Assembly: GCF_963506605.1 (NCBI RefSeq)
Contig: NC_083279.1
Coordinates: forward strand, 62,744,001 to 62,808,000
From: Zootoca vivipara
Taxonomy: Eukaryota
Direction: 5' to 3'
DNA: 64,000 bases
Of this stretch, positions 3,161 through 45,589 are shown piece by piece. A program made the position numbers and the translations under genes. The notes beneath the pieces are model-generated. The model saw nothing but the letters and a program-made list of their open reading frames with translations. It made no database searches and had not been told where the DNA came from. Positions within the stretch are counted from its first letter, which is position 1. Every line of letters begins with the position of its first letter.

Positions 3161-3604
3161 AATATCATTTCTTCACTTCCAATATCATTTCTTCCATTTA
3201 CATGCTGCCTTTCTATTAAGGTAGCCAAGGAAGTTTACAATTTTAAAATACCAAAATGAGAAAGAAGAAGAGAGCATAAAAACAGCAAATCTCAAACAAA
3301 GTTTCCACAGGCTGTTTGATAGTCCCTTTAGGAGCTGATGATATGGATCCCTTGATCTGGATTTTTCACTTTGGCCTTCCTTCCAGCCGCATGTTTTAAA
3401 TAGGCTCTTGGGAAGGTGTGAGGAGAAACTCCCTTTAAAGTTATTTTGAGCCATTGTTTATTTCCTCAGGAGCTCCTTGATGTAGGATTCTTCCCTTCTT
3501 TACTAGTGCAAATCATGGAAGGGCATACCTTAAAAATCTGCATTATCACAACGACAGATGAGCCATCAGTTTTGTGAAGGGCCTGTTGTGTGCCATAGAC
3601 TAAG

Positions 3605-10368: not shown

Positions 10369-10398
10369 CTATCAAATAACCAACCTAAATACCCCCCT

Positions 10399-13300: not shown

Positions 13301-13742
13301 TCTCCAACAAAATGTCATAATGGGAAGTGGTACATGCTCACCGCTGAATCTTGGTATACGGCTTACACCGCAGATTCCATCTTATTTGTCATCTTTATCT
13401 GTTGCGGCCCACAGATTTGCTTTTACTAAAGCAAGATTTAACGTTTTTCCATCCAACGTTATGGGCAACAGGTTTACTAAAGGACAAATTTCAGCATTAT
13501 GTGCATGTGATAACAAAACTATAGAATCTCTCCATCATATATTATTCTGTTGTCCCTTGCACACGGACTCCCGGACCAGATTTCTACTTCCCTTAATAAC
13601 AGAAAGTTTGACTGAGAACTTGGAGTCTCAGTTAACATATCTGCTACAAGACAGCGACCCTAGCAGAACACTGCTAGTAGCAAGATATTTGGTTACAGTT
13701 CTCTCATACAAAAGGAAAAATGGTTTACTTCATGATTACTGA
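10399..13742 (+). pseudogene. LINE ORF2 (APE + RT), one frameshift near 11112
   Basis: WNIAG, LQETW, GGDFNAR, LDYLIV in the first frame; SDHLPL, KAPGPD, FIDLKAAFDSI, GVRQGCILAPFLF, LLYADD, YLGV in the shifted frame. Confidence 0.92.
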
Positions 13743-14246: not shown

Positions 14247-14366
14247 CAGGATTGGGGGTACTGCCAACAAGGGCATCTGTGGTTTCACAGTGGTCTCCAT
14301 TAGGAGGACTCTTTGGTTCTTCACTGGAAATGGCAGACAGGGTTATCCCCTCATCCTTTTCATCTT
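14247..14366 (-). CDS. CD2-like gene A exon 5 (acidic cytoplasmic segment)
   Basis: ctttccaacag acceptor, GTAGGT donor, 120 nt, phase 1-1: EDEKDEGITLSAISSEEPKSPPNGDHCETTDALVGSTPNP. Confidence 0.7.
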
Positions 14367-15839
14367 CTGTTGGAAAGCATAATGAGAGACTGAAAGGGGG
14401 CAAATCAATTAATCAATTAATATGGGTGAGGTAGAGTTTCGGCTTTGTGGGTATTCCTTCACCAATGCTAATTGCTGTCTACTAAACTGTACCCGACCTC
14501 TCCATAAAACACCCAAATCACCCCCCAAAAAATTCCATGTACAATTGCATAGTTATTGTCTTCAAAGGTTGCCATGCTTCATAGAGCAAAATAGCAGGTG
14601 CCCTATTTTACATCAGAGGTGGCTAACCTGTGGCCCTCTACTGGGTGACATCTCATCCAAGAGAACATTGGCCAGGCAGGCCGAGGCTTTGGGGAGCTGA
14701 AGTTCAGCAACATCTGGAGGGTCACAGGAACCCCGCTTTCACCTGTGGGTTTGTTTAGGATTGAGGAATTGTTCACATGTAGCTAAACTGTTGATTATTT
14801 TTATGAGGATGACCCAGTAAAGGGCACTAAGAGAATAAGAATTATAGGCAAAGAGGAGAAGAAAACTACCAAAATGCATACAGTGAATAGTGGGTATAAG
14901 CAGTTTATTTCCAACTTGTATTAACTCTAGTTTAAGAAGGGCAAGGTCTCCAGGTGGTCTCCTGATGCCCCGTTGGAATAAGATCAGTAGGTCTGGGTTT
15001 TCCCCCATGTGGATTCTCCTAAACTTCAAGAGCAAATTGTGGAACAGGTGCCTCTTGTTCTGGTGATGCCAGAATTGAGTTCTTTCCAGAGGCCTAATCA
15101 TGCAAGGAAACCTAAAAAAAAGTGACACTTTGATGCCAACATTGCCATCATCGTGATTTGTGGTGCCTGTAGGCAAAACTTATCATGACGAAGCCTCTGT
15201 ATCCCTTCTGTTCCCATGGCATATTATGAGACCATTTCTAGTTGCAACAACTTATGCTAAGAGGAGTGTAAGAAGTTAGGGTGACGGATTTTGAAGAAAT
15301 ATCAGGTAGGCTTGATAAGAAATTTGGAAGATAGATCCCAGGTGCAGGGTCCCTTTCAACAGGTCTATGATTCTATGTGCCGAAGGAGCTGCATACCTAA
15401 AACATAGGTTAGGGATCATATGAATAAAATCATCTAAATGATCCTTGGTCCCTAAAACAAGAATGATGTAACCTTATGAGAAATATACCTTTGCAGAAAT
15501 GCAGTCAAGTGTAAAACCTGAGAGGCAGGCTGGGATGTGGGCAAAGGAGCCATGGAAAGCAAATATGAGCTTTATTCTGGCTGGTTGCAAAATCTGCCTA
15601 ACTTCAGAATTGTCACTTTTGTCACAGAGTGTAAACAACTGCAGTTATAGGAGGAGCTTAGATTCATCTATAATAACCTATTTTTTAAAAAAGAATGTAA
15701 CTGTGGTTACAGGCCTATGCATTGCTTACATGGGGAGTAAATGCGGCTGGACTTAGTAGATTTCACTTCTACGTAAACATGCAATAGGATTGCGCTTCAA
15801 AATGCAATGCAAAAAAGAAGAGGGAAAACTGCTACTCAC

Positions 15840-15977
15840 CCGCAGGCACTGGGGTGAAATGATGCTTGCTCTTCATGCAGCAGCATGTGATCAGTGAGGC
15901 AATAATGGCCAGAAGGAGAGCACCCCCTCCACACGCTACCATAATATACAGGAAGTGCGGGTGCTGCAGCAGATCTC
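15840..15977 (-). CDS. CD2-like gene A exon 4 (transmembrane)
   Basis: 138 nt, phase 1-1, AG/GTGAGT: RDLLQHPHFLYIMVACGGGALLLAIIASLITCCCMKSKHHFTPVPA; CGGG motif as in the CD2 TM. Confidence 0.88.
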
Positions 15978-17000
15978 CTGATTGAAAGAAACAAGGTTGT
16001 TCTTAAGCAGTAAAGAAACAGGAGCAACCTAAAGACAGGACTCAGGGTCACCACGATGTTAAAGGTGTCTTTGCCTATAATATGCAAGGTGTGTGGTTTT
16101 TTAATGCAAATAATGTTGGTGGGGAGAAGACCACTGTTAGTTATCAGAATCCTACCAGGCATGGAGAAGTTATGTAAGGATGCTTCTAGACTGCTACTAT
16201 GGGGGGGGGGGGCAAATTCAGGTTGCAGTCACACCCATATCATACATTTATAGCACATCTAAAGCATATGACTTCCCCACAAAGAATCCTGTGAATAGTA
16301 GTTTGTTAAGGGTGCTTTAAATCACTGGTCTTCGGCTGATGGGTTGGGACCCACTAGGTAATGAGCTACCCTTTGATCCTTCACACCTCATTTTACTTGA
16401 AATAAAATTTACTTACAAAAGAACATGATTCACTCTGCCTCCCACTTCACTTAGATCAAACTTAGGGGAAAAAAACCCACTTAAGGCTGGAAACATTCCA
16501 TTGATACATAATACAGTAATCCACTTTATAGCCTAGTATGCTTTGATTCCTTTTTATATTTTAGTTCCTAGGAATTGAAGCGGCTTTCAGTCACTAATAT
16601 CTACATTTATTACTATTAAAAAATATTCTTCTCCCCGCCACCACTGCTTTTGGAAACCAAAAGGTTCCTGGGCTCATTCTGAATTATGGAGTGCCAACAG
16701 GATTTTCCAGACCTGGTCCACTCAGTGTGGATTGCCTGCTGTGCCCCATCTATCTAGTTGCAACAGTACCGGCCCTTCCATTAGGCAACACAATTTGAGT
16801 ATCAACAAAGGGCAACAACTTATTAGTTATTTAATTTGTTGTCATTGTATTTTTACAAAGGACCGGGGTTCTGGGGTTTTCTGTCTCAGGTGACAGTATA
16901 ACTTGGATGGCCTTGGGGATTATGTACCTTGCCTTGGTAGGAATTCATGGCACCATTTTCCTGGTCAGCTGCAGACAGCAAAATGTGTTGTGCTGACCCA

Positions 17001-18001: not shown

Positions 18002-18654
18002 TTCTGGGGTACATATTCAAATATGTTGTAAGATGTATTCAGACATGTTTTTCCCACTTTAACATTTTCATTAAGTTTTCCAATATACAGAGGAACAAGA
18101 AATAAATAAAAAAAAGTTTCCCCCCCCAAAAAAAACATCATGGCCTGCAAGAAAAAAATGAGAATGCTGTATGGAACAAAGTAAATAACAAACCATCATT
18201 TTCCAGAGGGCCTTTCACCAAAAGTCTTTAAAATAAGCATGGGGAAAAAAGGAAGAAATCCCCTCCCTTGTGTGTCTGTTAACTATTATCTATTAAGGTC
18301 CAGAAATTATATTTAATATCTGAAAGCTTTACAAAATCCCAATATTTGCGTATGTGGATGGGACCAAATGTCCATGTTCTTTCAGATTAGTGTATAATAT
18401 AAAGTCATTCCACATGGCAAAGTAATGGTCACTAGTGAATTGGCCTCCCATTAGCCCCAGTCAACATGGCCAAAAGTCAGGGGTGATGGAAGGAACTGTC
18501 CAACAATGTCTGGAGAGCACCCAGTAGGCAGGGAGCTGCTTCATGAATGAAGGGAAACGATTTTGTGTTGGTGAGTCAGAGAGACAGATCTGCTGATATA
18601 TAAATTCAAATAACACGTTGAAAACCCATAAGAAGAAGGTAAAATATAACTTAC

Positions 18655-18909
18655 GATCATTACCACCATTACATGACAGCTCAATGGAGGAGCTGCTACG
18701 AGAGTCTCTTCTATGGCAAGCCAGCTTTCCCTGTACCCCTTTCCCCAAAATAATGTTCTTGCCACCATCTTTCACACAAGCATCAAAATCATTTATTCTT
18801 CTCCCATTCCGAGTCCAGTAAACTCCATAATTGAATTGGCCATCTGCTTCACAGGACAAATTTGCTCTTCCATCAGGTAGACAATTGATATAAACAGCTG
18901 GAGGCTTCT
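18655..18909 (-). CDS. CD2-like gene A exon 3 (IgC2 domain)
   Basis: 255 nt, phase 1-1: EKPPAVYINC..ANLSCEA...VYWTRNG...GKLACH...IELSC; CD2/SLAM D2 four-Cys pattern plus one extra Cys. Confidence 0.9.
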
Positions 18910-20130
18910 CTAGGCAGTGGAACGAGAACAACAAAACAGAGAGAAAAACGTTACCATGACAGGACAGTGGGAACCATCATCTGAACCTTTCGTTGTTGTT
19001 TTTTTCATTTAATCCCCTATTACCTCCTTCAACTATATATAACATTCAATGGATCCTAATGGATTTTTCCTGCTGTTTGCCTCCTGAGAAATTGAAAACC
19101 CCTCATGGTCCTTGTAAACAGACCTGCTCCACTACTAAAATTTACCATCTTCTAAATTGGGATTCCAGTAATCTTCAAAAGCAAATCACATGGATTGCAG
19201 GTTCCTATTAACTTTGTTTTTAGGGGTACCAGCCCAAGGGCAGGCAATTAAGGTGCAATCCTGTATTGAAAATACAGTACAGGGGACAAGCACACTTATG
19301 TTACTTCAATACGTTGCCATGCCCATGTCAATCAAACTGCTTCACCAAACCATCAACTTAATGTTGACCATCAACTTCATCATGTCAGGAGCCACTAATG
19401 GTTGTGTGAAGTTGGTTCATATTAGCTCCAGTCCAAAGAACGTGAGCCCTCTTGTGACTTGTTGAAATCAAGCATACAGGGGAAAATATGGGGTGGTGAT
19501 TGTTGTTGCTGTTTTCCAGATCAGAAGAAATATATGGAAAATCTGAGTCACAATGTAGAAGCTGGGCAAAGGAATATTTCTGGCCAAAACATTCCCATAC
19601 AAAATGTGATTCTCGCAATTCAAGCATGCATTTGAAGTAATGAAGGAATTGGTGTTTCCTTCTTCCTCTTTGGCAAGTTGTATCTTTGCTATTTAAATCC
19701 CACTTACGTGTGTACCCAAAACACCATTGCCTTTGCTACATCAGTTGCAGTTCTGCCTGTTTGCCTTTGGGTGGCACTTAAGAGTAATGTACTTAAACAC
19801 TTGAATCATACATGCATACTTTTCTTATGGCACTTTCTTATGTTTTAACAAACTGATCCGAGAGCGAACCGTGTGCATTTATTACACTAACCAGAATAAA
19901 TTAGCTCCCTCCTTTAACCTGTTGTATACCAACCCGCATCTTTGAACGAAAACCAACACTCCCATTGATCAAACCCTGTTTAAAAGGGATATGGTAGTCC
20001 CAAGTCTACGATTGCAGCATGAATGTTGGAAAGAGCCTTTGCATCACCGTAGCTCCTTGTCTGTAAAGGGTTTACTTGTCTTCTGCAGCTGTTAAAAGCC
20101 AAGGATCCTCTGTCCATACAAGATGGAGAA

Positions 20131-26426: not shown

Positions 26427-28395
26427 TTCTCACAACTGTTAGAGCTCAAAAACTCAGTTGCTGCAAAATAAATCTCCACTTTATGAAACTCTTTCATAGA
26501 GAGATGCTTTATAAAAAGGAGTGGGAACTGGCAGATGCAATTCTGTTTAACACTCTGAATAGGCCTCAGCAACTGCATTTTGCATCTCCTTGTTAACTTT
26601 CCTTCTGGGAATCCTGTGTTGTTTCTCACTCTGCTGCTGAAAGGTGAGGAGGTGTTTGGATGGCAGGTTGCTTGAAAATCTGCATGAGTCTGTCTACCTG
26701 GCCAGCCAGATAACAGAAGTCGCTTTTGGGTGGATTCCAGCAAGGGAAGTGAAACAACCATGCTATCACTTTCTTTGAGATTGAAAGTGAGAAGCTACGG
26801 ATGATAAGATTTCCCCAGTTGCATTTCATTATTGTGGGCTGACTCTGTCTCACACTCTGCTCTATGGTCTCATTTTGTATGGGAAATTTCTAATTAATTT
26901 TGGGAATTGCATGTGCGTAGTTTGTCCTCGTTCATTCATGTTAGTTTCTCTCTAGCCACATGATCCATGCCCATAAGTTTGTGACTGAACGTGAGTACGG
27001 ATCATTTGAAAAGTTGGGAATGTGCACTGCCAGGTACATCAGAAAGGCATACTCTATATTGACCTTCTTGAACAAAGATTATGATTAAAATGAAAAAGGT
27101 GGTGAATAACCCAAGGCAGAGAGAGACATTACTTAAACACAAATAAGATTTATTGAGAAAAGAAAAACCGAAATTTGGACTTATAGGAAAATCAAAGAAA
27201 CATAAATTATCTGTTTCCTAATGACTTATGATACGACCCTAAACATTTCTACTCAGACACAAGCCCTATTGAGTTTAATGGGGCTTATTCCCAAGTAACT
27301 GGGGTTAGTTAGCATTAACCATGAATTACAATGAGCTACTTAAAAAGTGTAAAATTTCACACAAAGTACTGAGTGACAAATCAGGGGTTGAAAGCTAAGA
27401 AGTGCAATCTTTTGGCATCCCCATCCAGATAGGCAAGAAGGTTCAAACTAGATTTCCAAGGACAACATTTATAGTTTCAAGATGGCGGTTATTTTGGTTC
27501 ACCTACCTTTTGATCTGATGCAAATCTGACGGGCAAGTTAGCAGCTTCTACGTTCAATGTGACTATTTATACGGTCTAATGTGGCCTAAGAGCACAGTCT
27601 GCAACCATAGTTCTATATCTTGGTCATTAATGAATGATTCTGAAACACTTTATACTTATAGGTTTAGTACCTAGCAAGGGGATGTGTGTTTAGGTGTGGT
27701 TTAGGCAGGAAGCAGAGTAAAAGCCAGTCGTACACAAATCTATTTTCCATTTGGGCTGAAACTTTTGACGTGAACAAGTCAGCAGGGTTTCCTTTTTTTA
27801 AAGAAAATAAACTTTTGCTTTTTAATGCATACACTTTTAGTAACTAAATTACAATAAAACATGTTCATATGCCAATATATATATAGAAGATATATCCAGT
27901 CCAGTCCCCTTGCAAAAGCATAGCTTCAGCTTCTATAGTCTTGGATTAAAAGAAACCTGAAGAATGACAAGTCTAGCAACTCATACCAACAGCAGTTTTA
28001 ATAATGCATCCCCAATAGGCATAGACAAGGATAATTAATGATCAGGGACAATGCAAGAGGGGAAGTTGGATGATACACAATACATATTAAACATTGCTTA
28101 TTTTAATCAGGACAATACAGTACAGTTGGGTCTTAACAGATTACAACATAATATTGAATCTATACATAAAACTCACCCCATTTGCTATCTATGTAATGAC
28201 AATTTGCTGAAAGAGCAGTTTCTCATCACCTCACGAAGAGGTAAAATGGCCTTTTATTGTTTCATATTTGCGAGATTAAAATTAGTAATAAGATTTATTT
28301 TTTTACACTTTGAAAGCCTCTGCCTAGCTACTAAATGAAAAGCATCTTCTGACAAACGAGATAGCATGTTAAATAGAATTGGGTCTCAGATGATT

Positions 28396-28442
28396 TCAGA
28401 ATTCCATTGTCTCTTTTCCCATCATGCATGTGTGCTGGGTCA
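28396..28442 (-). CDS. Gene B probable terminal coding exon ((V)TQHTCMMGKETMEF*)
   Basis: atttcttccag acceptor, phase-1 compatible; AATAAA on the minus strand at ~28255 and ~28295. Confidence 0.55.
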
Positions 28443-28659
28443 CTGGAAGAAATGCATATTTATTCTCTTAATTCCATTGCATCATCAAACCTCTCACAGA
28501 ACACAGTCCACAAGATCTGGAAGAACACAGCTGCCATCCCAGCAAACAGAGTTGTCACTCCTCAGTAGACTAGCACTACAACTCCTGACATTCATACACA
28601 GTGGTGGTGATAAAGTGTTTTCTTTCTCTGAACAGAAAAATAATATGTATACATCTATA

Positions 28660-28762
28660 AGATATTTCTCACCCTGTGGTCTCCAAACTTTCCCGGCTTT
28701 CCTGCATTGCAGGGGGTTGGACTAGATGACCCTGAGTCACTTCCAACTCTACGATTCTATGA
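28660..28762 (+). mobile_element. CR1 LINE 3' fragment
   Basis: gggttggactagatgacc...ttccaactctacgattctatga. Confidence 0.7.
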
Positions 28763-29032
28763 GTCCTCCTAAAACACTAAAGTACTTATCTCCCTCTGTC
28801 TAAAACTGGGGTGAAGATCCAACAACTGAGATCCAACATCTGGATCTCCAGATGTTGGCGGAGTAGTACAACTCCTATAATTCCTGACTGCTGGCTATGC
28901 TGGTGAGATTTGATGCCCAACAACATTAGGAAGCCACACATTCACCAACCCTGGTCTAAAATAAAGAGTTCGTTTTCTCTATACAAGACTTGTCAGAGCC
29001 AGACCACAGATGCGGTGGGGTTGTGCTTTTGC

Positions 29033-29121
29033 CATAGCTGCCAAGTTTTCCCTTTTCTCACGAGGAAGCCTATTCAGCATAAGGGAATTTCCCTTAAAAA
29101 AGGGAGAACTTGGCAGCTATG
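29033..29121. mobile_element. 89-bp hAT-type micro-MITE
   Basis: Same TIRs as 1153-1242; perfect 8-bp TSD gcttttgc. Confidence 0.88.
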
Positions 29122-29987
29122 GCTTTTGCCTCGGGTGGCAGAAGTACAAGAGGCGGCACCCCATCTGCCCCACCACTTCCACCACCACCAAATTTTAATA
29201 AGAGAGAGACATTCCAGCATGCAGTGCTGCCACTCATTGGGTGAGAGGGGGGCAGGAATTGTGCAGGGGCGTGGCAGGGGCAACAGAGGGGGGACAGGAG
29301 ACAGCACATTCCCATTTCACCTCACGTGGTGAAATGAGATGCGCCACATCTGAGACTTCCCTATTTTACCACAGCTCCAATTGACATCTGGGCAGCGACC
29401 ATGCTACAAATGCTGGACATTTCTGCTGCTTTCACTGTATAGAGAGAAATTCCACCTAGTCCAGCTTTCTGTTCTCGTAGTGTCCAACCAGATGCCTATG
29501 GAAGGCCCAGGAAAGTTCTGTTGTGCTCAAGTAATTCTTTCAGGCTCCCCACAGGCATCAGGTTGCACACTATGAGGAAAAAAAACTTCCAAAATTCACT
29601 TTTGTAAGTGTCCCCCAAATTTCATGGAGGCTCAATCACTTTTAGCATATTTATATTTCAGACTTAAGCTGCTTTATGTGCTAGTCATTCTCCTTCTCCA
29701 GAAACCTGATGTGCTATGAAGATGGCCAGAATAATCAGAGAATCCTCAGCACTTTTGCCTAACTACAGTTCCCAGGAGGCTGTGGGGGTGTTAAACCAAT
29801 ATAAAACTTAATATGTTTGCAAGATAAGTATGTCCTTAGATATTTAGCCAAGCAGTACAACCTCATCTGCCTATTGCCTTATAACTAGAAAAGTCCTCAG
29901 GATGCTCAAGAGATGCTCACAGCTAAACTATTTTAGATAAAAATGTGTCTTTCCTGTCTGCAGTGTGGTTCAGTTTTGGTCACTTAC

Positions 29988-30152
29988 CTTGAAAACTAGA
30001 GATATTTAAAAGCATGGGGTTTCCTGTGTTGGGAGCTGCTGCTGCTGCTATTGCTGCTACTGCAGTCTCTTTTTCATTCCCAGTTGAAAACCATTGACCT
30101 TCTTCTCTGGTTTCTATAGCCTGTGGTTTTTGTAACTCTGGACTTGCAGTTG
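29988..30152 (-). CDS. Gene B exon 6 (cytoplasmic)
   Basis: 165 nt, phase 1-1, ttgctttcttgctcag acceptor, GTAAGT donor, open frame TASPELQKPQAIETREEG...NISSFQ. Confidence 0.7.
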
Positions 30153-30443
30153 CTGAGCAAGAAAGCAAAAAGCATGGAAAGTAAATGCTGGTTCAGCACA
30201 ACATTAACATATAAGCATGTTGTAACACAGGAACAAACAAAAATTACTAAGTACAGTACTCTATAGGGGGAATAGGTTTTAGCATCATTACACAAGGTTT
30301 CTGTATACTATGGGGCTCACTCCCAGGTAAGTAGCCTTTTCTGAAGACCATAAATAGAGGGTCCAAAATCTGCCTTGGGTCCTTACTGGAAAGAGAGAAA
30401 ACAGATTAGAAACAACAAGAAGATGCTTGGGAAATGTAACTTG

Positions 30444-30861
30444 CGTAGGTGCCAAGTTCTGGATCGAAAAATTTGGGATCAGCAGTGCCACGGCACCTGA
30501 AGTCGCTTCTACGCACTTCTGGACATGCATAGAAGCGACTTCCGATGCCGCTGTGCCCATTTCCAAAATGTCCGCAGCGCCAGAAGTCGCTTCTACGCAC
30601 TTCCGGACATGCGTAGAAGTGATTTCTGGCGCTTCGGACATTTTGGAAATGGGCACAGCGGCATCGGAAGTCACTTCTACTCATGTCCAGAAGTGCGTAG
30701 AAGCGACTTCCGGTGCTGGCGCGGCACCAGAAGAACATGGCCCCCGGCAGGAGCTCTGTAATCCAGGGGAATACAGGGTATTTTGCCATTCGGGACACCT
30801 GTGGGAAACGGTAAGAAAATACGGGGGTTTCCCGGAGAAAACGGGGTACTTGGCAGCTATG
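30444..30861. mobile_element. hAT-type MITE with internal direct and inverted GAAGTCGCTTCTACGCAC repeats
   Basis: Termini cgtaggtgccaagt...acttggcagctatg; motif repeated 5-6 times in alternating orientation. Confidence 0.75.
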
Positions 30862-30926
30862 AACTTGTGGGACCTCCTGATAAATACAAAACCATAGTCG
30901 CATTTTTTGTGAGCATGTAGCTCAAT

Positions 30927-31049
30927 GTGACCCAGCACACATGTATGATGGGGGGAAAAGACAATGGAATTCTGAAATAATCTGAGACCCAATTCTATTT
31001 AACACACTATCTCATTTGTCAGAAGATGCAGTTCATTTAGTAGCTAGGC
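30927..31049 (+). repeat. Inverted ~123-bp copy of 28322-28443 (gene B last exon and start of 3'UTR)
   Basis: Manual alignment gives about 90% identity to the reverse complement of 28322-28443. Confidence 0.9.
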
Positions 31050-32542
31050 CAGGGACATCTTTCCCGTTTGGGCAAGCTGGTTGAAGGCTGACTGGGAGAG
31101 ATGCCTTGCACTCCAGTGCTGCATTGCTGTGGGGAACAAGTCCCTCTTGAAATGACCATGCTGTAAGAGTTGGACTCCCTCCATGCAGACGGAAGGTGTA
31201 AATATGCAAATAAAACAGATTTCTTAAAGCAGTCTCCACTACATCTTCGATTCTCCAGGGGAGCTCAAACCATCAGTGAATGCCTGAAACCCCCTGGAAT
31301 CTTGCTACTGGTCGGCAGTACTTTGTTGGAGTGGAGTTTAATTTATAAGGAAGGAAAACAGGCAGAACCATCACTTCTTTGAGGTGAGTAGTCTCCAAAA
31401 AAAAAACCAAAAATCCTTGCTTCCAGAAGCTGATCTGCAGTGCTTCAGAATGTCCTACTTACTAAGTGGCACTGTTCACATGAGTATTCTGCTCGCTGAA
31501 CTGTTAAATGCACTTGGTGGCAGCAGAACACAGTGTATGAATCACCCCATAATGAATAACAAACTAAACTTGGCAATGATGCACCGACACGACCTAAATG
31601 CAAGCACAGTAAAGAAGTTCTGAGAGCTTTCTGGTTTTTTATTTGTCTTTTAACTGGCATGTAAAACCATAAGAACTGCGGAAGAGTCTAGCTAGCTCCA
31701 ATGAAACAGATTTATGTTATTGTCTATGTATTCTCTTCCATTTATATCCCATCTTTCTTCCACCCTGAATCCAAATATACATGTGGTTGCAGGAAGTCTC
31801 CAGTCCAGGAACTGAATCTCATATATTAATTTAGGCCTGCTTCACACATCATGCTAACACAAACTATGTGTGAGTGTGGAGGCTCCCAGAGAGGAGATCA
31901 CAGCAGCTTTGCTTCTCATCAGTTGCTTGGCTGCTGCACCAAACTGGGAGAGCTAAACCATGAGCCTAGGTTTGTACAACACATCAAGCCATACCATGGA
32001 GTTGGAAAAGATTTTTCCCTCAGGCACAACTGGCCCAAGACATTTCCCTCCCCCAGCCCCAGCAGCTGTGTATTTGTGTATTTGGAAGGTCAAAACTGTT
32101 GGATCTCACACATGGCTTTGTTGGTGGCCTTGAGCAGAACCTTAGGTTGCAGGGCAGTGCCAGACTGTGGGTACTGGAGGACCCATGGCCTTCTTCTGTA
32201 ACATTTGGCTTGGCTCATTTCTCTCTGTGGTCTAGAGCTAAGGATTCCCAACAGAATTTGCTGCTTTCAGCTTCTGTGGTCTGAGGTATCTCCAAAACAA
32301 TTTGTTCCGGACCCGCACACCTTGATTTGCAATAGAAACATATCACACCAAAACCACCTTTGTTTGTTGTCCTCACACAATTACCAGGGAGAAAGGTCAC
32401 ACTCTTCCGACTTCCTCCTGTCCTGCCCTCAACTGCAACATACAGAGGTCTCTAGCAGTTGGGACTCTACAATCACAGTTTTAGATCCTATGGAAGCCTA
32501 AACACATAGAGATTAGTGTACACTGGTTTCTCAGCTGTAATA

Positions 32543-33575
32543 CCGTGTTTCTCACATTATAAAACATCCCTACAAAATAAGGCATGGCAGGATTTTTCTG
32601 AGGTGGCAAAATATAAGGCATACCTCGAAAATAAGCCATACCGCAGGTCTGTGGCAAAGAAGAGGAAAAGGAAGGGGGCTGCTCGGAACCGGATGCTGCT
32701 GCTGCGTTAACCCCCAGGACCCGGCTGCAGCCTTTGCGCGCGGAGCGCGAAGCCCCGGGTCCCGGCAGGACCCTCAGCGCACAGTGCGCGAAGCCCCGGG
32801 ACCCGGCTACAGCCTTTGTGCGCGCCGCGCGAAGCCCCGGGACCCGGCTGCAGCCTTTGCGCGCGGCGCGCGAAGCCCCGGGACCCGGCTGCAGCCTTTG
32901 CGCGCGGCGCGCGAAGCCCCGGGACCCGGCTGCAGCCTTTGCGCGCGGCGCGCGAAGCCCCGACACCCGGCTGCAGCCTTTGCGCGCGGCGCGCGAAGCC
33001 CCGACACCCGGATGCAGCCTTTCCACGCGCCGCGCGAAGCCCCGACACCCGGATGCAGCCTTTCCACGCGCCGCGCGAAGCCCCCGCTTGCAGACAGTCA
33101 CCGGGCTCTAACTAAGGTATGGACTTTTTACCTCAGGCGGGGAAATGGGGTGGGGGTCGGTTGGCGGCGAGGGAGGGGCGGAAGGAATCTGAGGGGTTGC
33201 ATTCTGACACGCATCTTGCCCCCGCCGCACAAAGCGGGTTGAGGATGTGCGCCCGGCTGAGGTGCAGGCATGGGGGGGGGGAGAGAGAGCAGCAAACGTT
33301 TCCTCAGGCGATCCGAAATAGCAGGGTGACTCCCTTGCCTGCCTGCCTGACTCAATCAACTCAGCAAAACCACCTCCGCTCCCCAGCTCACTGCCCGGTG
33401 TGGGAGCGAGAGGACACACACTCGCAACAGGACACACAAAACACGATAGCGGGGGGAGCTACTGCACTACCCATGTACTGTAATAAAAATAAGACATCCC
33501 TTGAAAATAAGCCATGGTGGGTTTTTTTGAGGAAAAAATAAATATAAGACATGTCTTATAATATGAGAAACACGG
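32543..33575. mobile_element. Tc1/mariner (Tc2-like CCGT termini) non-autonomous DNA transposon
   Basis: TIRs CCGTGTTTCTCAYATTATAARACAT, TA TSD (32541-2 and 33576-7), subterminal AAAATAAG repeats. Confidence 0.9.
32712..33085. repeat. GC-rich 40-41-bp minisatellite (~9 copies) inside the transposon
   Basis: Unit cgcgaagccccgggacccggctgcagcctttgcgcgcggcg; period 41 (32721, 32844, 32885). Confidence 0.95.
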
Positions 33576-33582
33576 TACTCAC

Positions 33583-33672
33583 GTTGGTCTTGCTTTCTCC
33601 TATAAACTACTGCATAGTCAGGCACATTCTTTCTCCAACTTGCATGGCGTTGTCTTCTTGTTTTCCAGAGAA
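33583..33672 (-). CDS. Gene B exon 5 (membrane-proximal cytoplasmic, Tyr motif)
   Basis: 90 nt, phase 1-1, AG/GTGAGT: VLWKTRRQRHASWRKNVPDYAVVYRRKQDQ. Confidence 0.72.
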
Positions 33673-35451
33673 CTTAAACCATATAAAATAAAAAGTGTGG
33701 AAATGGTTTTCATTGAGAACTGAAAGCACATATTACTGGTGCCGTAGTCACTCCTAATAGCCCATCACCTCCTACTATTATTGCAGGGGTGCAGACACAA
33801 TCCCATTTCTTTCTTTGCCTTTTCTTTTTCTAGAGCAAGTGAAAGGTGGGTCACATTCCTCCTGTCCATTACAGCCTTTATGAAAATTGGCACAGATTTT
33901 AAGGGAAGCTTAGAATAAAGTCTTTCCCCAGCAGTAACTGGCTTTCCGGCATATGCATACAGAAAAACCCTCAAGCTATTTTCTTTTTAACCAACTAGCT
34001 TTGCACCACTTAAAACATGGCCTGAAATATCCGTTGGCAACTTCCTCTTATCAGGGACCCTATGAAAGCTAAGAGGACAGGAGGCACATGCGAGAAAAGG
34101 TGTGGGCGTCAATTAATTGCTCACAACCCATCACGTGCTCATAGCCTTTCAATGCTGGCAGGAGGAAAGGCGATGGATCCAATTCTTTGTATTTTCCCTC
34201 TTCAGAGGTTGAGTCTTGGTGGCTAGAGATGGGGGAGTTCAGTTCACATTTAAAGGCAAATCTATTAAATTCACAGAAGCAAAATTCACAGAACCTTCCA
34301 TCCAAAAGAAAAAGGTAATAAGACAGGGCAGATGGGCTTGATGATAGCATGTATCATGCTGTGTTCCTACGAACTGATACAAGAATTCCCAAAGGAATCT
34401 TCACCTCTTAAAATATATCTACAATAACTTGGTTTTTTAAAAAATAAGTGCATGCATATACTTGCTATCAGCTCAGTTTGTATGCCTACCTAGTACACTG
34501 TGATTCATGTTAGTAAGCAAACAATTCAACAATGCCAGCAATCCCAAAGGGGATCTTCAGTTGAAAATGTCTTACTTTAGACTCAAGGATGTGGCTCTCC
34601 CTGGCATGCGCCAGAGGGTGGCAAAGTCTGCATCCTGGTTTCAGCTAGTCACAGTGCAGGGAACTGGAAGTGACACACTGCCCTGACACACTCACTGCAG
34701 CCTGATAAAAGACGGCAGGTCATGCGGGAGAGTGTGATAGACGCACACACAAAGGGGGGGGGGCAAGGAGAAAGGATTATTGGCAAGTGCACAGCAACGA
34801 AGGACAGCTAAGAAGCAAGGAGGGGGAGAACCTCTGTCCCAGCAAAACTGCTAGAAAATAATATTAATTGTGAGTGGGAGATGGGGAAAACGGAGAGGAG
34901 AAATCTGCAGCTACAGAGACAAAGCAGAGGCAGATTGAGAGAGTTGTGAGAGAACAGCTGTGAAAGAAAAAGAGACAGCTGAGGTTACAAACTTCAGTAA
35001 GAAAAGCTGAGTGAAGTTGTATGGGCTGCAGTGATCGGAAACACCCATATGAACTATTCCAGGTCTTTGAGGCCTCCCGTGTATTGGGGGGGGCGCACAG
35101 GGGGCTCTTACATGGAACAGAAATCCTGACACACAATGGGTTGTTATGTCCGAACCAAGAACTGCATTCGCTTCAACAAACTACAGTTTAAACTGAGCCA
35201 AGATCAGAAACCGCTGTTTCAATAAACCATAGTTTGGCCCTACCCATAGTTTGGTCCACTTCAGATGTAACCAATTATGGTCAGCTTAACTCAGGAAGCA
35301 GATGAAGATCTCTTCCTCTGATGCATGTTGGAGGAGGAGAGAGGACAGGAGAATGCTTGAGTCCACGTCTTGAGTAGGCTCACTCCTATTATGCTAAAGT
35401 ACAGTTTAGCATTATGTCCAAACAGGTGTTATATGCTGACCTCCATCTTGT

Positions 35452-35487
<36 letters not shown>

Positions 35488-35697
35488 AGAGAGGGGGGGG
35501 AGAGAGAGAGTGATCCCAATGTGCTTGGTGTGCTTGTAAAAAAAAAAGTGATCAGGCTGCACATGGATTTTCATCACCATGAGATGAAAAAGGTTTTATT
35601 GAGAAAGTAAAAGAAAGAGTTGCATTAGACAACCATCTGTACCTTTTGAGTGAGTTTCCCCCATTATGGTAAGCAAGGTAAGTCAAGGAAAGATTAC

Positions 35698-35829
35698 CTG
35701 GCTTCCTCTTCCATTTTCCAACATGATATATACATGAGCCCAATAGAACAAGAAACGCTGCAACAAGAGCTCCTGCTAAGATGAAGAAGAATATACGGGG
35801 CCAACATATTGTCTTCTGTGGATTAGGTT
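35698..35829 (-). CDS. Gene B exon 4 (transmembrane)
   Basis: 132 nt, phase 1-1: QPNPQKTICWPRIFFFILAGALVAAFLVLLGSCIYHVGKWKRKP; hydrophobic span plus basic stop-transfer. Confidence 0.85.
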
Positions 35830-37008
35830 CTAAAATTAGAATGCAATTGTGAAAATAATTACCTGTTTTAACTCACTTCTGACAGGTAGTTTTACAAAGA
35901 GCTCTGTTTGTACTTTTAATGACATGCGGCGCTGTGTAAAACATTAATATTACCCTGTCAATTTATTTAATCATTTCAATTAACTACCTTGCTCTTAACT
36001 TTTTCATCAATTAACTATGTATAATAAATGTTACATGAACTCAGCTTGACGGAGGGGGGCAGCACACAAAACTATGTATTTTCATACATTGCTTAAAAAT
36101 CAGCTTCAGTCTTATACAAGCTTTCCTGGGAATAAGCCTCACTGAACTGAATGGGGCTTACCTCTGAGTAAACATGCATAAGATTCTAGACATATCCTAC
36201 CAACTCTACCAATTCTAAAATCTTTTTACAAGGAGCAATCTTAGCTAAAAACAAGTGAATCTGTTATCAAACTGATAAGTATAATTGTTTAATGTACATT
36301 GAATTGGGGGGAAATCTATAATGTGCCTATATTGCACTGTTAAGGACGACTAGAAATTTCCATTGAAACTGAAGAAGAGCCTAACAGGTGGATCATGAAG
36401 TGGGGATATGTCTCTGTGCCTCGATCACAAGATGTTTAGCTCACAGTCATATGGAAAGGATTGTATTGCAGATCTAGGCATATGCTAATCTGTAGGCATC
36501 CATATTGGGTGGGGTGTTTTCTTTTTTCCAAGCTACTGAAAAGAATGGATATATGAATCTCTGTCTCCAGCAAGCAACCTGAGACTAATGGAGGCTGCAG
36601 TGGAGGAGAGACAGAGCTTTGATTTCTAGCTCAGAATACAACATATTTGTAATCTAAGATATTTTGGCTTCTGCTGGGAGAAGTGTAAAAAATATGCATC
36701 TAACTGAAAGTAACTTTTATTGTTTTAAGTTGTTTGGAATTAAGTTCTGTAAGTGAAGCTTCTGAGCTATATTTTGGCCTGGAGAATATTTATTTCAATA
36801 CAAGAGTCGGTTTTTATTCATCCAGCAGATTACATATGTGCAATATTAATAATCTCAATAGGGTTTCCCGCTGAAACATAACTTGGTTTTCATTCATCAG
36901 GTTCTCCCTTATTACATGAAGCAACACCTAGCACCGGTAATTCCAGGTGCTTTTTGAAACATTGTGTAAGGAGGAAAAAATAATCTCTGCAAAACTACGG
37001 TATGAATA

Positions 37009-37286
37009 TAGGGTTGCCAGACTCAATAGAGAACTGGACTTCTGTGCCTTTAATTGACCTGCTCTCTTTTGAGTCTGGAAACCTTAAAGAGAAAGCAGCA
37101 GACCCTTTGCTTGGAAATTAAACAAAGGGTCTGCTGGTTTCTCTTTAAGGTTTCCAGACTCAAAAGAGAGCAGGGCAATTAAAGGCACAGAAGTGCCTTT
37201 TTTTTTTAAAGGAGACATTTTGATTAAAATGCTTTGGTTGTCTATTGAGTCTATTGTCCAGTTCTCTATTGAGTCTGGCAACCCTA
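37009..37286. mobile_element. Fold-back hAT MITE
   Basis: TIRs TAGGGTTGCCAGACTCAATAGAGAACTGGAC, long internal palindrome, perfect 8-bp TSD tatgaata. Confidence 0.92.
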
Positions 37287-37743
37287 TATGAATATCATTT
37301 TCAATTTTAGCTGCAAATCAACATTTCTAGCAGTTTCTTAACAGTGAATGAACCCAATTTCTGTTGTTCCATTTTAAGGGCAGTCTACCACACTGTGGGC
37401 ACACAAAGTTAAGTGCCTGTAGGTTCTGTTGATTACAACACAGCAAGTCAGTCCAATTGGCTTAGCATGGCCTAAAGGTACATATTGTTGGCAATGGCAT
37501 TAATAAAAAACATTAATGTCCTTCTATTCAGTAAAAGTACCAAGTTTCTTTTACTCAGAGGTAAGTGTTATTGTACTTTTCTAAAGTATTTGCAGCAGGC
37601 TCTGGTCAAAAGGAATGTATGAAAGATACACAGTTACAACAAAATTATGGTATAACCGTTCCAGTGGTTAGCTATTGCACAGATGAACCTTGTAAATACT
37701 TGATACTCATCTTTGAGCATGAAAATGCCCATCTAATACTCAC

Positions 37744-38049
37744 GTATAAGTTCCAGTTGAATTGTGTGACTGTACTGATACACACCATCCTTGGTAAACA
37801 CTTCTGCTGTGTACTGTCCGATATCCTGCACTTGAGTGGGGCACAAGCTCAAGCTGCCATTGTTAAGTATAAGACATCTCTTGGTGTCTATACAAGTTGT
37901 AATATTCTGGCCATCCACCTTTCCTATTGTGATATTGCCCTTCTTCCAAATCACATCATGAAGGTGGATTGATTGTTTTGTGGTCTTCATTTCAAGGAGC
38001 ATACAATCACCAAGTGTTCCTTTGGTGAGACTAACCTGCAGTTTGGATC
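37744..38049 (-). CDS. Gene B exon 3 (second IgV domain, CD2-family type)
   Basis: 306 nt, phase 1-1: GTLGDCMLL..VIWKKG..NNGSLSLCPTQVQDIGQYTAEVFTKDG..IQLELI. Confidence 0.9.
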
Positions 38050-38457
38050 CTGAACACAGAGCAAAAATATGTGGACATACAATTCACTTCGAGCCTCAAA
38101 AATGTGTGCACTAAGTAGATTTGAACGAATTTTGAAAACTTTTATTTCACTGAATTAAAATATTTCAATTTCAGGGGTACATTTCAAATTTCAGCCATGA
38201 AACTGAAAGCAAAGTAGTAAATGCAACTCTCAGGGAGCTATTCAATTTAAAAAGTATACTAGCACAATGCCTTTTAGCTGCACAATGTAACTTCTCTGCC
38301 CTCTCCCCATCCCATGTGCCATAAATCCGCTCCTAAATGTGTTCCTCTAACTCTCCAGCTGTTCTGACTATTATACAGCTGAATGCTGCAAATGCATGGC
38401 ACTTATTTTATAGGAATAACACACAGTCCCTTAGAAGAGGGCCTATCTGATACTTAC

Positions 38458-38757
38458 GTGTAAGCAGCAGTTCCTTTCTGTTACTGTATTGAAAGCGTCC
38501 ATCCTCACTATATGCTGCCACTGTATAATGCCCAATATCGTCCAACTGAGTAGGACACAAGCTCAAGGTGCCATTGTTATAGATAAAACATCTTTTGCTA
38601 TGGATTGTACAGTTCTGACCATTGATCATCATCCCAATCAAGGCATTGCCTTTCTTCCAAATCACGTTGTGAATGTGGATTGCTGGGTTCCTGTTCTCCA
38701 GATCAAGGAGAATACAATCACCAAGTGTTCCATTGATGAGGCTATCCACTTTGGATC
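38458..38757 (-). CDS. Gene B exon 2 (first IgV domain, CD2-family type)
   Basis: 300 nt, phase 1-1: GTLGDCILL..VIWKKG..NNGTLSLCPTQLDDIGHYTVAAYSEDG; resembles the CD2 D1 pattern GALGQDINL/IKWEK/NGTLKI/DQDIYKVSIYDTKG. Confidence 0.9.
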
Positions 38758-40971
38758 CTAAGCATGTCAATAAGATGCGATGGGAAGACATTTAATTCAT
38801 TAACACCCAAATTGAACAAAGCATACCAATTCACAAAACTGTAATTTCATGAAATCAAAATGTACAGATTTCAAGAGGACATCTAAAAATTTCAGACACA
38901 AAACACAGCACAGAAGCAAATTCAAATCTCCATAGTAAGATATGGCTGGTAAAATTCATTTCCCAGCTGTAATCAACATAATTTCAGACTTTTTCAGAAG
39001 TGAAATATGACAGCTTTAAATATAGAACATCCATTTTTAGCATTGTTATCTGACATAATTAAACCCTGGGAATGTTTATATCCAATATCTCTTTTGTTTC
39101 CTTTTTTGTTTATAATATTTTATCAATTATTCCAGGGTGGTTCACAAACTGGTCTTAAAACAGTAAAGCATCAATAATTAATATCTATCCTTTCATTGTA
39201 AGTAGTTGCAGCATCACCAGGCTTTATCCAATTGGATTCAAAGAAACTAGGGGTGGATTGTTCAAAATGGTGAGTGTAGGATACCCTCTTGAACCCAGTA
39301 ATTCTGTCACTGGCTGCTTCTTCCAAACAGTCACTGCATGTTGAAATAGTCAACCCAGACTCAAGTTTTCCCAAGCTTACGGGTGTGCCAGTATGGTGGG
39401 ACCACCCCCATAAAATGCTGAAATCCCATTAGTATGCAGTGCTGCCCCATGTAGGCTGAAGCTGTCATGGTTGGACACAACTACATATCTACATGCTCCA
39501 GTTTGTCATGGTTGTCTTGAGCATCTGATCATGCCATAAATAAGTTTGACCATGATTCCCCTCTTTCAAATAAAGCACGTATAGAAACAGGGGCATGAGC
39601 TCTGGCCAATCCTCTTTGCCACCTGGTTAGTCAAATGATTGTGTGCACGCACTGGGAGATAGCCAACCACTGTTCCTGCAGTACACTAAATTTTTATTTT
39701 ACATCGAAGCAGAGTTCTATGATAAAAGAGGTTTGCAAAATTTCAAAATGTTGGAAATGGACAAGAGCTGTCTCAGCTAAAGAGACAGGTAAAAATACTT
39801 GAAGTAAATAAATAAGAGGCCATTAAGTCCAACTCCTTGCCAGTGCTCATGATTCTCCACACACTAGCGTCCTGACCCCTGAGCTGACAACAAGCAGAGA
39901 TCAGACTCAAAATGGACAAAGAGATAAATATCTAAAATATTGTTAAACAAGCTATTTACGGTGTAACATGTTCCCTTTTCCAGGCGGTCTCACCAGAGTA
40001 TTGACTTTTGCGTGGAAAATCAGTAGATTCATCCAAAGCCTTATTTGCTGGCATGGCATCACCAAAAACTGGACCAGAAATATAAAAATAATAACATTAA
40101 GAAAAGCTGCATATCAACGATTCTTTCCACCATATGAATAGATAACCATGAATAATACCACAATCTTAAGGCAGAAATGTATTAGTTTTAGTACATGAAC
40201 CTGGAGGGCAAAGTTCCTGTTTCCTAGTTGCTTCCTCATTTTGGAGTTGACACAAGGCTTTGGACATGGGCATCTCATGGACCAGTATGAAAGCAAGAAT
40301 GCTGGATTGGATGAGAGTTTGGTCTGATCCAGCAAGGCTCTTCTGATAGTTTTCTGTAACTATTAGAGACCTTACAACCAGCTCCAGATTTTCTTCCACC
40401 CCATCACAATGACGGATGTGTAGACTTTAATCATAATTTTCGACAAAAATATGTATCCTCTCTTTCTATAAATATCTGTGCTTTTTTTAAAAAAAATGTA
40501 TGTTGTTTTTTAAACATATCTGCAATCTCATTGGCTTCAGTTTCTTTCTGTGATATAAGCACCGTTTTCAAAAATACTTTAGCTTATTGTTTTTTTTTCC
40601 ATTATCTTATTATATTAAAGAGATTTGGGGGAGGGGGTTGACCAATCTTGCAAAATACATTTGATTCCTCTTTTACCAAGGTACTTAATAAGCAATTTCT
40701 AACATAAATAGTAATACTGTGTATTAAACTTTTTGGAAATTTAATTATGATTCACCCCATAAAAATGTATCCCATTCATACACCACTTACAGTTCTGCTT
40801 GTTGGATTTACACTGCATTTGATGCAATTACAGCAGACGAAATCTTAGTACTCTGATATACGACAGTCACTGTCTAGTCCTACACATAAGCATGACATAC
40901 CAAGTCACTGACTTCCATGAAATATTTACTTGGTTGTAGTTCATTCACATCCAAGCCAAAAAGAAACTTAC

Positions 40972-41041
40972 CTTGAAGAACAAGTAGGCCTATATAAACC
41001 ATTGATGGGACAGGAAAAATAGAAAATGCTTGAGAGTTCAT
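40972..41041 (-). CDS. Gene B exon 1 (signal peptide)
   Basis: ATG at 41041, 70 nt, phase 1, GTAAGT donor: MNSQAFSIFPVPSMVYIGLLVLQ(G). Confidence 0.78.
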
Positions 41042-44649: not shown

Positions 44650-45215
44650 GAGTCTGTATGTTCCGAATATGGCAAGAGCTTTAAGTTGGAGCATCTGACT
44701 TGGCCGTGCGCCAGAGGATGCACTCTGGAGAAAAGCTCTTTTAAGTGTACTGAGAGCTCACATCTCACTTGGCCCCTGAGAATTCACACTGGACAGAAAC
44801 CATATATGTGTCATGAGTGTGGGCATAGCTTCAATCAGAGACCCAATCTTACCAAACATTGGAGAATATATATGGGCCACAAGCCCTGTGTTTGCAACGT
44901 GTGGAAAAATAATCAGTGCCAGCTCCACCAGTAGCAAAGGATGCACACAGGAGAGAAGCCATAAAAGTGTCCAGAATGTGGGAAGAGCTTCAGCCAACCA
45001 TCTCATGTCACTCATCACCAATGGATCCACAGTGGAAAAAAGCCATAAATGTGTGTGGAGTGTGGGGAAAGCTTTGAGCAGGGCTCAGATCTCATTAACC
45101 ACAGAAGAACCCACACTGGTGAGAAGCCCTATAGCTGCAACCAGCTATACCTCAGTAGGTATTCCAGCCTTATTAAATGCCAGAGAATTCATACAGGAGC
45201 ACATTTGTATATGTG
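44650..45215 (+). pseudogene. Decayed C2H2 (Kruppel-type) zinc-finger array
   Basis: HTGQKPYMCHECGHSFNQRPNLTKHWRI and [29 protein letters not shown], with stops, frameshifts and lost Cys/His. Confidence 0.85.
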
Positions 45216-45589
45216 TGATGATGCAGGAAATGTTTCTGGTTCCAGCCCAGGCATAGAAACACTATGCTTGACATAATTAAATCTGAATGACAAATGCCCT
45301 TTGGTGATGGGCAAGGGGTGCTCAGGAAGTATACAAAAACTAGAACTGAAACATAATCCAGACAAGGTAGAGTTGATCATGCTGGGTAGCCCAAGTACCT
45401 ATAAAGGGATGGAAATGCCAGTGTTGAATGACTCCTCCACCACCACCAATAGATCGAGTTTGTAGCTTGTGAACATTCCTGGACCTAGACCTCTTGGATG
45501 GACAAGTCAAGGCAGTTTCATCAGCTTTGACTGATTTACCATCTGTACCCTTTTCTGGGACAGAGGGTCCTGCATACTGTTGGGGGCAT

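Follow-up and report, generated by a model that had tools for sequence, protein, structure and literature searches.

What kind of receptor carries two V-set immunoglobulin (Ig) domains and no C2 domain, and how did a lizard come by it? The question is raised by a gene on the minus strand of a 64,000-nucleotide stretch of the Zootoca vivipara genome (assembly GCF_963506605.1, contig NC_083279.1, positions 62,744,001 to 62,808,000; the whole stretch is called the window here and all coordinates refer to it), with coding exons between 28396 and 41041. An earlier reading of these letters, the original prediction, took the gene for a CD2/SLAM-like receptor of an undescribed squamate architecture. 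We conclude that it is probably a sauropsid paralogue belonging to the CD2/chB6 cluster and encodes a type I membrane glycoprotein with a V-only ectodomain, and that in it squamates duplicated one ancestral V exon (Vb) and lost another (Vc). The locus is a real, conserved gene, already annotated yet unnamed and unstudied.

Structure of the gene

Every exon lies on the minus strand, and each border was read off that strand directly. The exons were searched singly and never joined for searches or folding, for which the database protein P0131 (NCBI Zootoca vivipara LOC118085352) served as full-length stand-in. The coding exon for the leader, or signal peptide (40972-41041, 70 nt), starts with the ATG at 41041 and ends in phase 1 at the donor G/GTAAGT (the slash marks the exon border). 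It is followed by a mini-exon of 25 amino acids (39994-40068, 75 nt, phase 1/1) with a polypyrimidine tract, the acceptor CAG/ and the donor G/GTGAGA. The two V exons come next, V1 (38458-38757, 300 nt, phase 1/1, donor C/GTAAGT) and V2 (37744-38049, 306 nt, phase 1/1, donor C/GTGAGT), both encoding V-set domains of the type that we call Vb below and both entered by the acceptor AG/GATCCAAA, so that they share the start GATCCAAA. The transmembrane (TM) exon (35698-35829, 132 nt, phase 1/1), which is skipped in Podarcis isoform X4, ends with ...GSCIYHVGKWKRKP and lacks a CCC motif. The cytoplasmic tail of ~130 residues is encoded by cytoplasmic exon 1 (33583-33672, 90 nt, phase 1/1), by cytoplasmic exon 2 (29988-30152, 165 nt, phase 1/1), which ends with the motif LNISSFQ common to turtle, alligator and bird homologues, and by one of two alternative ends. 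Terminal exon a, of the long isoform (28494-28627, 134 nt), ends in ...DCVL with the stop at 28494-28496, and terminal exon b, of the short isoform (28396-28442, 47 nt), has a stop ending at 28396.

Acceptors are AG and donors GT without exception, and the junctions are all in phase 1. The seven exons that had been joined before, without the mini-exon and terminal exon a, add up to 1110 nt, or 369 codons and a stop, exactly as predicted, with canonical splice sites throughout, and the claim that all cassettes are in frame holds as well. That model is incomplete in that it overlooked the mini-exon and the second terminal exon.

Each V domain has four cysteines, at matching positions in V1 and V2, and three N-glycan sequons. 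The B-strand cysteine is kept within GDC, and the canonical F-strand cysteine is not present in either domain, where the F strand reads Y-T-V/A. By eye, the two domains differ most in the B-C, C'-C'' and F-G regions.

The tail region has peculiarities of its own. Ten residues of cytoplasmic exon 2, ETAVAAIAAA, encoded by a GCA-rich repeat at 30020-30060, are missing from the NCBI Zootoca protein, and the run is probably a length polymorphism or a gene-model artefact. A 99-nt inverted repeat (28322-28420 and 30951-31049, 91% complementary) flanks cytoplasmic exon 2 and terminal exon a on both sides and reaches over the final 25 nt of terminal exon b, and the intron between the two cytoplasmic exons holds a palindrome with a perfect centre (30493-30716; two 112-nt arms, 92% complementary, 0 nt apart).

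An annotated gene conserved in lizards

The exons of the window correspond almost exactly to LOC118085352, an 'uncharacterized protein' of Zootoca vivipara in NCBI. Identity to P0131 is 23/23 residues for the leader, 24/24 for the mini-exon, 98/99 for V1, 101/101 for V2, 42/43 for the TM exon and 14/14 for terminal exon b, with a further comparison at 29/29. All eight exons agree with the Podarcis models, and terminal exon a matches Podarcis X1 and the Lacerta model at 38-41/43 amino acids. The mini-exon is included in every NCBI model of Zootoca and Podarcis that starts at the leader.

The top cluster of our profile search (see below) is 'uncharacterized protein LOC128412891/LOC114595955' of Podarcis raffonei, P. 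muralis and P. lilfordi, to which a word-based search added Zootoca LOC118085352 (P0131), Lacerta agilis LOC117045096 and a newer Pogona model. V1-V2 models thus exist in NCBI for Zootoca, three Podarcis species, Lacerta agilis and Pogona, and both V exons are intact in five lacertids and in Pogona, where both available models are incomplete, lacking the leader and the TM exon. V1 is followed by V2 in all lacertid models (nine distinct Podarcis isoform sequences, one Zootoca and one Lacerta). Variation among the lacertid isoforms concerns the TM exon, which is skipped (X4) or has an internal acceptor (X2), and the two terminal exons, never V1 or V2; the X4 form, predicted to be soluble, is annotated in two Podarcis species.

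Apart from terminal exon b, the V exons are also the best conserved parts of the protein. In Podarcis and Lacerta 94-96 of the 99 residues of V1 and 94-95 of the 101 of V2 are identical, and conservation across lacertid genera is lower for the TM exon (37/43 in P. muralis) and cytoplasmic exon 2 (43-45/54). Aligned to Podarcis muralis, V1 and V2 of the window reach 93-95% and the other exons 80-91%, terminal exon b excepted. The architecture, put forward as undescribed, is not unannotated, since the NCBI models already show V1-V2 under the name 'uncharacterized'. We found no paper on the gene, nor one that names any of six LOC identifiers.

Origin of the two V exons

V1 and V2 are 56% identical as proteins (tblastn E 1e-32) and 73% identical as DNA, somewhat closer than the ~50% estimated by eye beforehand, and both are indeed in phase 1-1. 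The likeness extends beyond the exons. Unit 1 (38441-38930, minus strand) comprises V1 with ~173 nt of intron upstream and 17 nt downstream of it, and unit 2 (37727-38231, minus strand) comprises V2 with ~182 nt of intron upstream and again 17 nt downstream. The two units align over 516 columns with 68% identity. The alignment reaches ~175-180 nt into the upstream introns and 17 nt past the donors, in agreement with the earlier remark that the upstream introns resemble each other at a ~700-bp offset. A third V copy was not found in the window by tblastn.

Could the second copy be a product of assembly? DNA contigs from an independent study carry their own single-nucleotide polymorphisms (SNPs) relative to the window and run continuously from V2 into V1 (37260-38549), and six DNA runs from two studies contain 75-95% of the words of the region. 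Since contigs with SNPs of their own span V2 and V1, the tandem duplication is not an assembly artefact, and the genomic duplication inferred originally stands, with units of ~0.5 kb. Between the two exons dN is 0.27 and dS 0.68 (dN/dS 0.40), and, by these rates, both V exons were evolving as coding sequence during most of the period after they were duplicated.

A V-only family across sauropsids

We searched a profile of V1 and V2 against 1.84 billion representative proteins and found 85 proteins. Beyond the lizards, a sauropsid multi-V family is matched at E 1e-19 to 1e-23. It includes birds (emu LOC112979290, duck LOC101800308, and proteins of goose, gull, crane, owl, ostrich, kiwi, plover and hoatzin), turtles (Pelodiscus LOC142820268 and proteins of Caretta and Mauremys) and crocodilians (alligator LOC102561689). 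Nearly all members are named 'uncharacterized', and some 'CEACAM5-like', 'CEACAM3-like' or 'PSG22-like'. The homologues that we read and aligned (emu, kiwi, plover, duck, two turtles and two alligators) have two or three V-like domains, one TM segment and no C2 domain, and their tails have in common an LNIS(T/S)FQ motif as well as repeats of the Cys-acidic-Pro kind (DCVLPEFD type). The lizard gene shows the same pattern: GDC ... WKK ... NGSLSLCP ... G.Y within a V-only ectodomain, one TM segment, and a tail with LNIS(T/S)FQ and a DC.LP-type motif.

For the three V positions of the family we coined the names Va, Vb and Vc; birds show Va-Vb-Vc and alligators Vb-Vc. A maximum-likelihood tree built from 28 V domains groups every V1 and V2 of squamates in a single clade (support 96/94) within the Vb group, apart from Vc (98/99) and Va (100/99); the node that bears on the timing of the duplication relative to the lacertid-agamid split is a polytomy. 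Because the tree places squamate V1 and V2 together in Vb, lizard V2 is not the orthologue of Vc, and it follows that squamates duplicated Vb and lost Vc. On this comparison of sequences, squamates stand alone only in having duplicated the Vb exon and lost Vc; the V-only ectodomain, which had been presented as a squamate feature, is wider, as the bird, turtle and crocodilian homologues, with their two or three V domains and their lack of C2, demonstrate.

We also considered the mini-exon as a relic of Va, from a likeness noticed by eye (DFP...W-K against DYP...W-K-K), and dropped the idea, as a hidden Markov model (HMM) of Va does not detect it.

Does the 1.9-kb intron between V2 and the TM exon (35830-37743) hide a C2 exon after all? 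It contains no Ig-like open frame, its ten longest frames have no Pfam match even at E 10, and a tblastn search with 13 homologues, among them five with C2, gives no match to C2 there. In orthologous gene models, too, V2 is joined directly to the TM exon. The absence of a C2 exon from this interval, on which the predicted V-V layout depended, is thus confirmed by open frames, Pfam and tblastn alike. What the intron does contain is a possible trace of Vc. In a six-frame translation of the 64 kb, the Vc HMM matches only V2, V1 and a short segment at 36513-36545 on the minus strand, at E 0.008-0.02 within the intron. The segment reads FFSVAWKKENT, against FFQVVWKKENT, and is 9/11 identical to duck and plover Vc by tblastn. 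It sits where a Vc exon would be expected and is possibly a relic of the lost exon.

A second weak HMM match in the intron, at ~36860-36927, was disregarded as it overlaps the edge of a high-copy repeat. The repeat, at 36912-37303, is a transposon-like element with internal inverted repeats; its DNA word depth is very high, and RNA reads that come from other copies of it continue into unrelated sequence.

Fold and genomic context

AlphaFold, run with a 13-sequence alignment, predicts beta sandwiches at residues 81-175 (V1) and 181-277 (V2) and a TM helix at residues 287-317, with block means of the predicted local distance difference test mostly at 60-85. In VIA-align the structural neighbours B7-2, CD58, CD48, NTB-A, JAML, TIGIT and CD84 all lie within one Z unit; CD58 matches with Z 13.1 at a root-mean-square deviation of 1.9 over 93 aligned residues, and CD58, CD48, NTB-A and CD84 are among the top ten. 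For the whole model, Foldseek ranks the V-V receptors JAML and CD226 first, with TM-scores of 0.2-0.4 and identities of 14-17%, and the ESM Atlas returns generic V-set neighbours only. Among Pfam families only Receptor_2B4 exceeds its threshold on full proteins (22-24 bits against a cut-off of 21); on single exons it falls below the cut-off, and V-set matches are sub-threshold. In the PDB, the V1+V2 profile finds rat CD2 domain 1, aligned along its full length, at E 1e-4 to 7e-4. The proposal that these are V domains of the CD2/SLAM type is supported insofar as they have a V-set fold without the canonical B-F disulfide. Taken together, sequence and modelled structure point to a V-set of the CD2/CEACAM kind and do not decide between CD2 and CEACAM.

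The genomic context is more telling. On the same strand, 5 kb downstream, lies a chB6 (Bu-1)-like V-C2 gene (14248-22388, minus strand), recognised by tblastn with the turtle protein P0163, a 329-aa V-C2 protein named CD2 by NCBI. Its TM exon (15835-15984) is 64% identical to P0163 (E 3e-17) and reads ...ITCCCMKSK, its tail exon (14248-14373) is 62% identical (E 3e-9) and its second Ig exon matches at E 1e-8. A CCC after the TM segment is the conserved palmitoylation motif of chB6/Bu-1, which combines V-C2 with this motif and a PxxP SH3 site (PMC11882424). The lizard counterpart of P0163 is therefore the neighbouring gene with its CCC motif, and since our gene has no CCC, it is a paralogue and not chB6 itself. 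The leader and Va of the duck family member are 48% identical to the leader and V of P0163 (E 3e-26). In chicken, chB6 lies within 20 kb of CD2 on chromosome 1 (PMC4031500), and the bird family members are found on the largest chromosome, at 205-226 Mb. In alligators, the chB6 orthologues cited by Funk (XP_006262352 and XP_006018969) and the family members (XP_006262334 and XP_006018947) have accessions spaced by 18-22, which suggests linkage.

We favour CD2/chB6 over CEACAM because of this context, namely the chB6-like neighbour, the match between duck and turtle proteins and the linkage of chB6 to CD2 in chicken, together with the contrasts to CEACAM given below. We place the gene in the CD2/chB6 cluster as a paralogue, one which by its lack of C2 and by its tail falls outside CD2/SLAM and by its lack of CCC and PxxP outside chB6.

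The neighbour has oddities of its own. Its V exon is highly diverged, with 2 bits against a Va/chB6-V HMM and no PDB match. An open frame over its second Ig exon (18464-18976, minus strand) has 932 PDB matches to antibody heavy-chain variable (VH) domains, the best at E 1e-5, which is unexpected for a supposed C2-type exon. Pfam and PDB searches of its exons were either uninformative or VH-like, and it was P0163 that settled the identity of the gene. Elsewhere in the window there are long reverse-transcriptase frames of the long interspersed nuclear element (LINE) type and C2H2 zinc-finger-like frames (8896-13739, plus strand; 1969-3172, minus strand; 44650-45273, plus strand), and no further Ig gene was seen in the window.

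Weighing the alternatives

Several points weigh against the interpretation as a functional receptor of the CD2/chB6 cluster that has lost Vc. The sequence links to CD2 are weak (E 1e-4, and Pfam barely over threshold), and the same profile matches mouse CEACAM1 in the PDB over part of the domain at E 5.6e-5. CD2 proper is not in the 64-kb window. The supposed Vc relic comprises only 11 residues at marginal significance. The function is deduced from relatives only: the tail exons contain no motif like the ITSM (TxYxxV/I; the tyrosine-based switch motif of immunoreceptors), and by eye the tail has neither an inhibitory (ITIM) nor an activating (ITAM) counterpart of it nor a proline-rich run. Three RNA-seq runs of Zootoca vivipara, of each of which ~6% was read, gave no spliced read or junction, so the V1-V2 junction rests on the NCBI models and on conservation. 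In two of these runs (X7 and X8) the depth on the exons is zero. The third (X9) has ~302 letters, about two reads' worth, on V1 and V2, from the strand expected for a minus-strand mRNA; by arithmetic only, its counts (110 in the V2 bin, none in the adjacent bins, 31+161 in V1) would fit one V1-V2-spliced read pair.

Might V1 and V2 then be alternative cassettes, with splicing regularly yielding V1-only, V2-only and V1-V2 forms and so switching the binding domain or the length of the ectodomain? This idea, a central one of the original prediction, draws on the phase 1/1 of V1, V2, the mini-exon and the TM exon, by which any combination stays in frame, and on the peaks of V1/V2 divergence (by eye) in the B-C, C'-C'' and F-G regions. 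Phase 1/1, however, is the norm for Ig-domain exons and carries little weight. For two Podarcis species the annotation includes forms that skip the TM exon, and one old Pogona model (XP_020666840.1) splices a 5' exon straight to V2; that model belongs to an older annotation and is incomplete, while the newer Pogona model has both V exons, as have all the lacertid models (nine Podarcis isoforms, one Zootoca, one Lacerta). With no junction reads in the three RNA runs either, we consider regular switching unlikely.

A different possibility is that the gene belongs to the CEACAM family, as one with multiple N domains in the manner of tuatara CEACAM1L4 or the mouse PSGs, and is no relative of CD2 or chB6. 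By E-value, mouse CEACAM1 is the best PDB match of the profile, if a partial one. Some relatives bear the CEACAM- and PSG-like NCBI names quoted above, mouse Ceacam23 is the sole mammalian protein among 30 named matches (E 6e-14), and CEACAMs made of N domains only are predicted in reptiles (PMC13278318). Per domain, however, the turtle chB6-like V scores 46 bits and mouse Ceacam23 29 bits, and the immediate neighbour is chB6-like. Zimmermann and Kammerer report no complete CEACAM gene in ducks or chicken (PMC13278318), yet ducks have intact members of the present family. The bird CEA locus holds CEACAM1 only, between LIPE and BCL3 (PMC13278318); in a check of the 64-kb window that was not exhaustive, no flanking genes of the CEACAM locus were seen. 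Finally, CEACAM N exons carry part of the leader (PMC13278318), whereas the leader of the lizard gene is on a separate phase-1 exon. CEACAM membership is thus, in our judgement, quite improbable.

It is hardly credible that one V exon is a dead duplicate kept in the models because it is in frame, or that the whole gene is an unexpressed pseudogene: near-nil RNA depth in three runs, sub-threshold Pfam scores of single exons and incomplete Pogona and Lacerta models would fit, but both V exons are open with canonical splice sites and 93-96% conserved across lacertid genera, above the TM and tail exons, dN/dS between them is 0.40 at a dS of 0.68, their cysteine positions match and each keeps three N-glycan sites, and the X9 trace reads fall on both of them in the strand expected for minus-strand mRNA.

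Proposed function and significance

Returning to the paralogue in the CD2/chB6 cluster, how would such a receptor have arisen and how might it work? In squamates, the Vb exon together with ~0.2 kb of its upstream intron was duplicated in tandem and the ancestral membrane-proximal Vc exon lost, so that V2 now occupies the place that C2 holds in CD2 and chB6. The protein consists, in this order, of the signal peptide, a 25-residue N-terminal piece, two V-set domains, the TM helix and the tail of ~130 residues with its two ends, and the V1-V2 form would be the normal product. By analogy with its relatives it may act as an adhesion molecule or co-receptor on the surface of leukocytes. The distal V1 would use its GFCC'C'' face to bind an Ig ligand at the cell surface, as happens in CD2-CD58 or 2B4-CD48, and the proximal V2 would preserve the two-domain span, the role of C2 in CD2 and chB6 and of Vc in archosaurs and turtles. 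Given where V1 and V2 differ, in the B-C, C'-C'' and F-G regions, V2 may also have a binding role of its own. The tail presumably signals via its conserved motifs, independently of tyrosine phosphorylation, and skipping of the TM exon would give rise to a soluble form. Candidates for the ligand are the chB6-like protein encoded next door, CD2 and the protein itself.

A bolder scheme goes further. The family would form a sauropsid-only branch of the CD2/chB6 cluster with V domains in place of the C2 stalk, in which squamates duplicated Vb and discarded Vc, and phase-symmetric cassettes (mini-exon, V1, V2 and TM) would yield receptors that vary in their binding domains, as well as decoys in soluble form, perhaps serving the neighbouring chB6-like protein or CD2 as counter-receptor. 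As a whole we regard it as a long shot.

To our knowledge, chB6 (Bu-1), the classic chicken B-cell marker, has neither a known ligand nor a known mammalian homologue, and the partner of CD2 outside mammals is unsettled. A conserved all-V family that in this lizard lies next to a chB6-like gene, with a leader and first V akin to those of a turtle chB6-like protein, is a candidate partner or paralogue of chB6. The lizard gene in addition offers a clean and datable case of domain replacement by exon duplication in an immune receptor, from Vb to Vb-Vb with the loss of Vc. The interest has its limits: duplication of Ig exons is common, V-V receptors are known (JAML, CD226 and CEACAMs with several N domains), the gene is already in the NCBI annotation and the splicing switch is without direct support.

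Comparison with known systems

Among known receptors, JAML and CD226 (DNAM-1) have the same V-V ectodomain and are the top Foldseek matches. With low TM-scores and identities, the likeness extends only to a generic tandem-Ig arrangement; both have canonical disulfides, and their loci are unrelated. The CEACAMs and PSGs (mouse PSGs, Ceacam23, tuatara CEACAM1L4) resemble the lizard gene in tandem V-type domains without the canonical disulfide that derive from exon duplication, and in the V-only ectodomains predicted in reptiles. They differ in locus and in the layout of leader and N exons, and the family of the lizard gene is present in ducks.

The resemblance to CD2, CD58, CD48 and the SLAM receptors lies in the V-set without the F-strand cysteine of the canonical disulfide, in leader, V, TM and tail on separate phase-1 exons, in rat CD2 domain 1 as the best full-domain sequence match, and in CD58, CD48, NTB-A and CD84 as structural matches. 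In contrast, CD2/SLAM members are V-C2 (V-C2-V-C2 in Ly9), whereas the membrane-proximal domain of the lizard gene is a second V; it has neither an ITSM nor the proline-rich tail of CD2, and each of its V domains carries four cysteines at non-canonical positions.

With chB6, finally, the gene shares the nature of a type I membrane Ig protein of the CD2 cluster. A chB6-like gene is its immediate neighbour on the same strand, the leader and first V of the bird family members are 48% identical to the turtle chB6-like protein, and the family tail, acidic and rich in cysteine and proline in turtles, crocodilians and birds, is a further likeness. It departs from chB6 in lacking the C2 domain, the CCC motif and the PxxP site, and in having conserved motifs of its own, LNIS(T/S)FQ and the DCVLP type.

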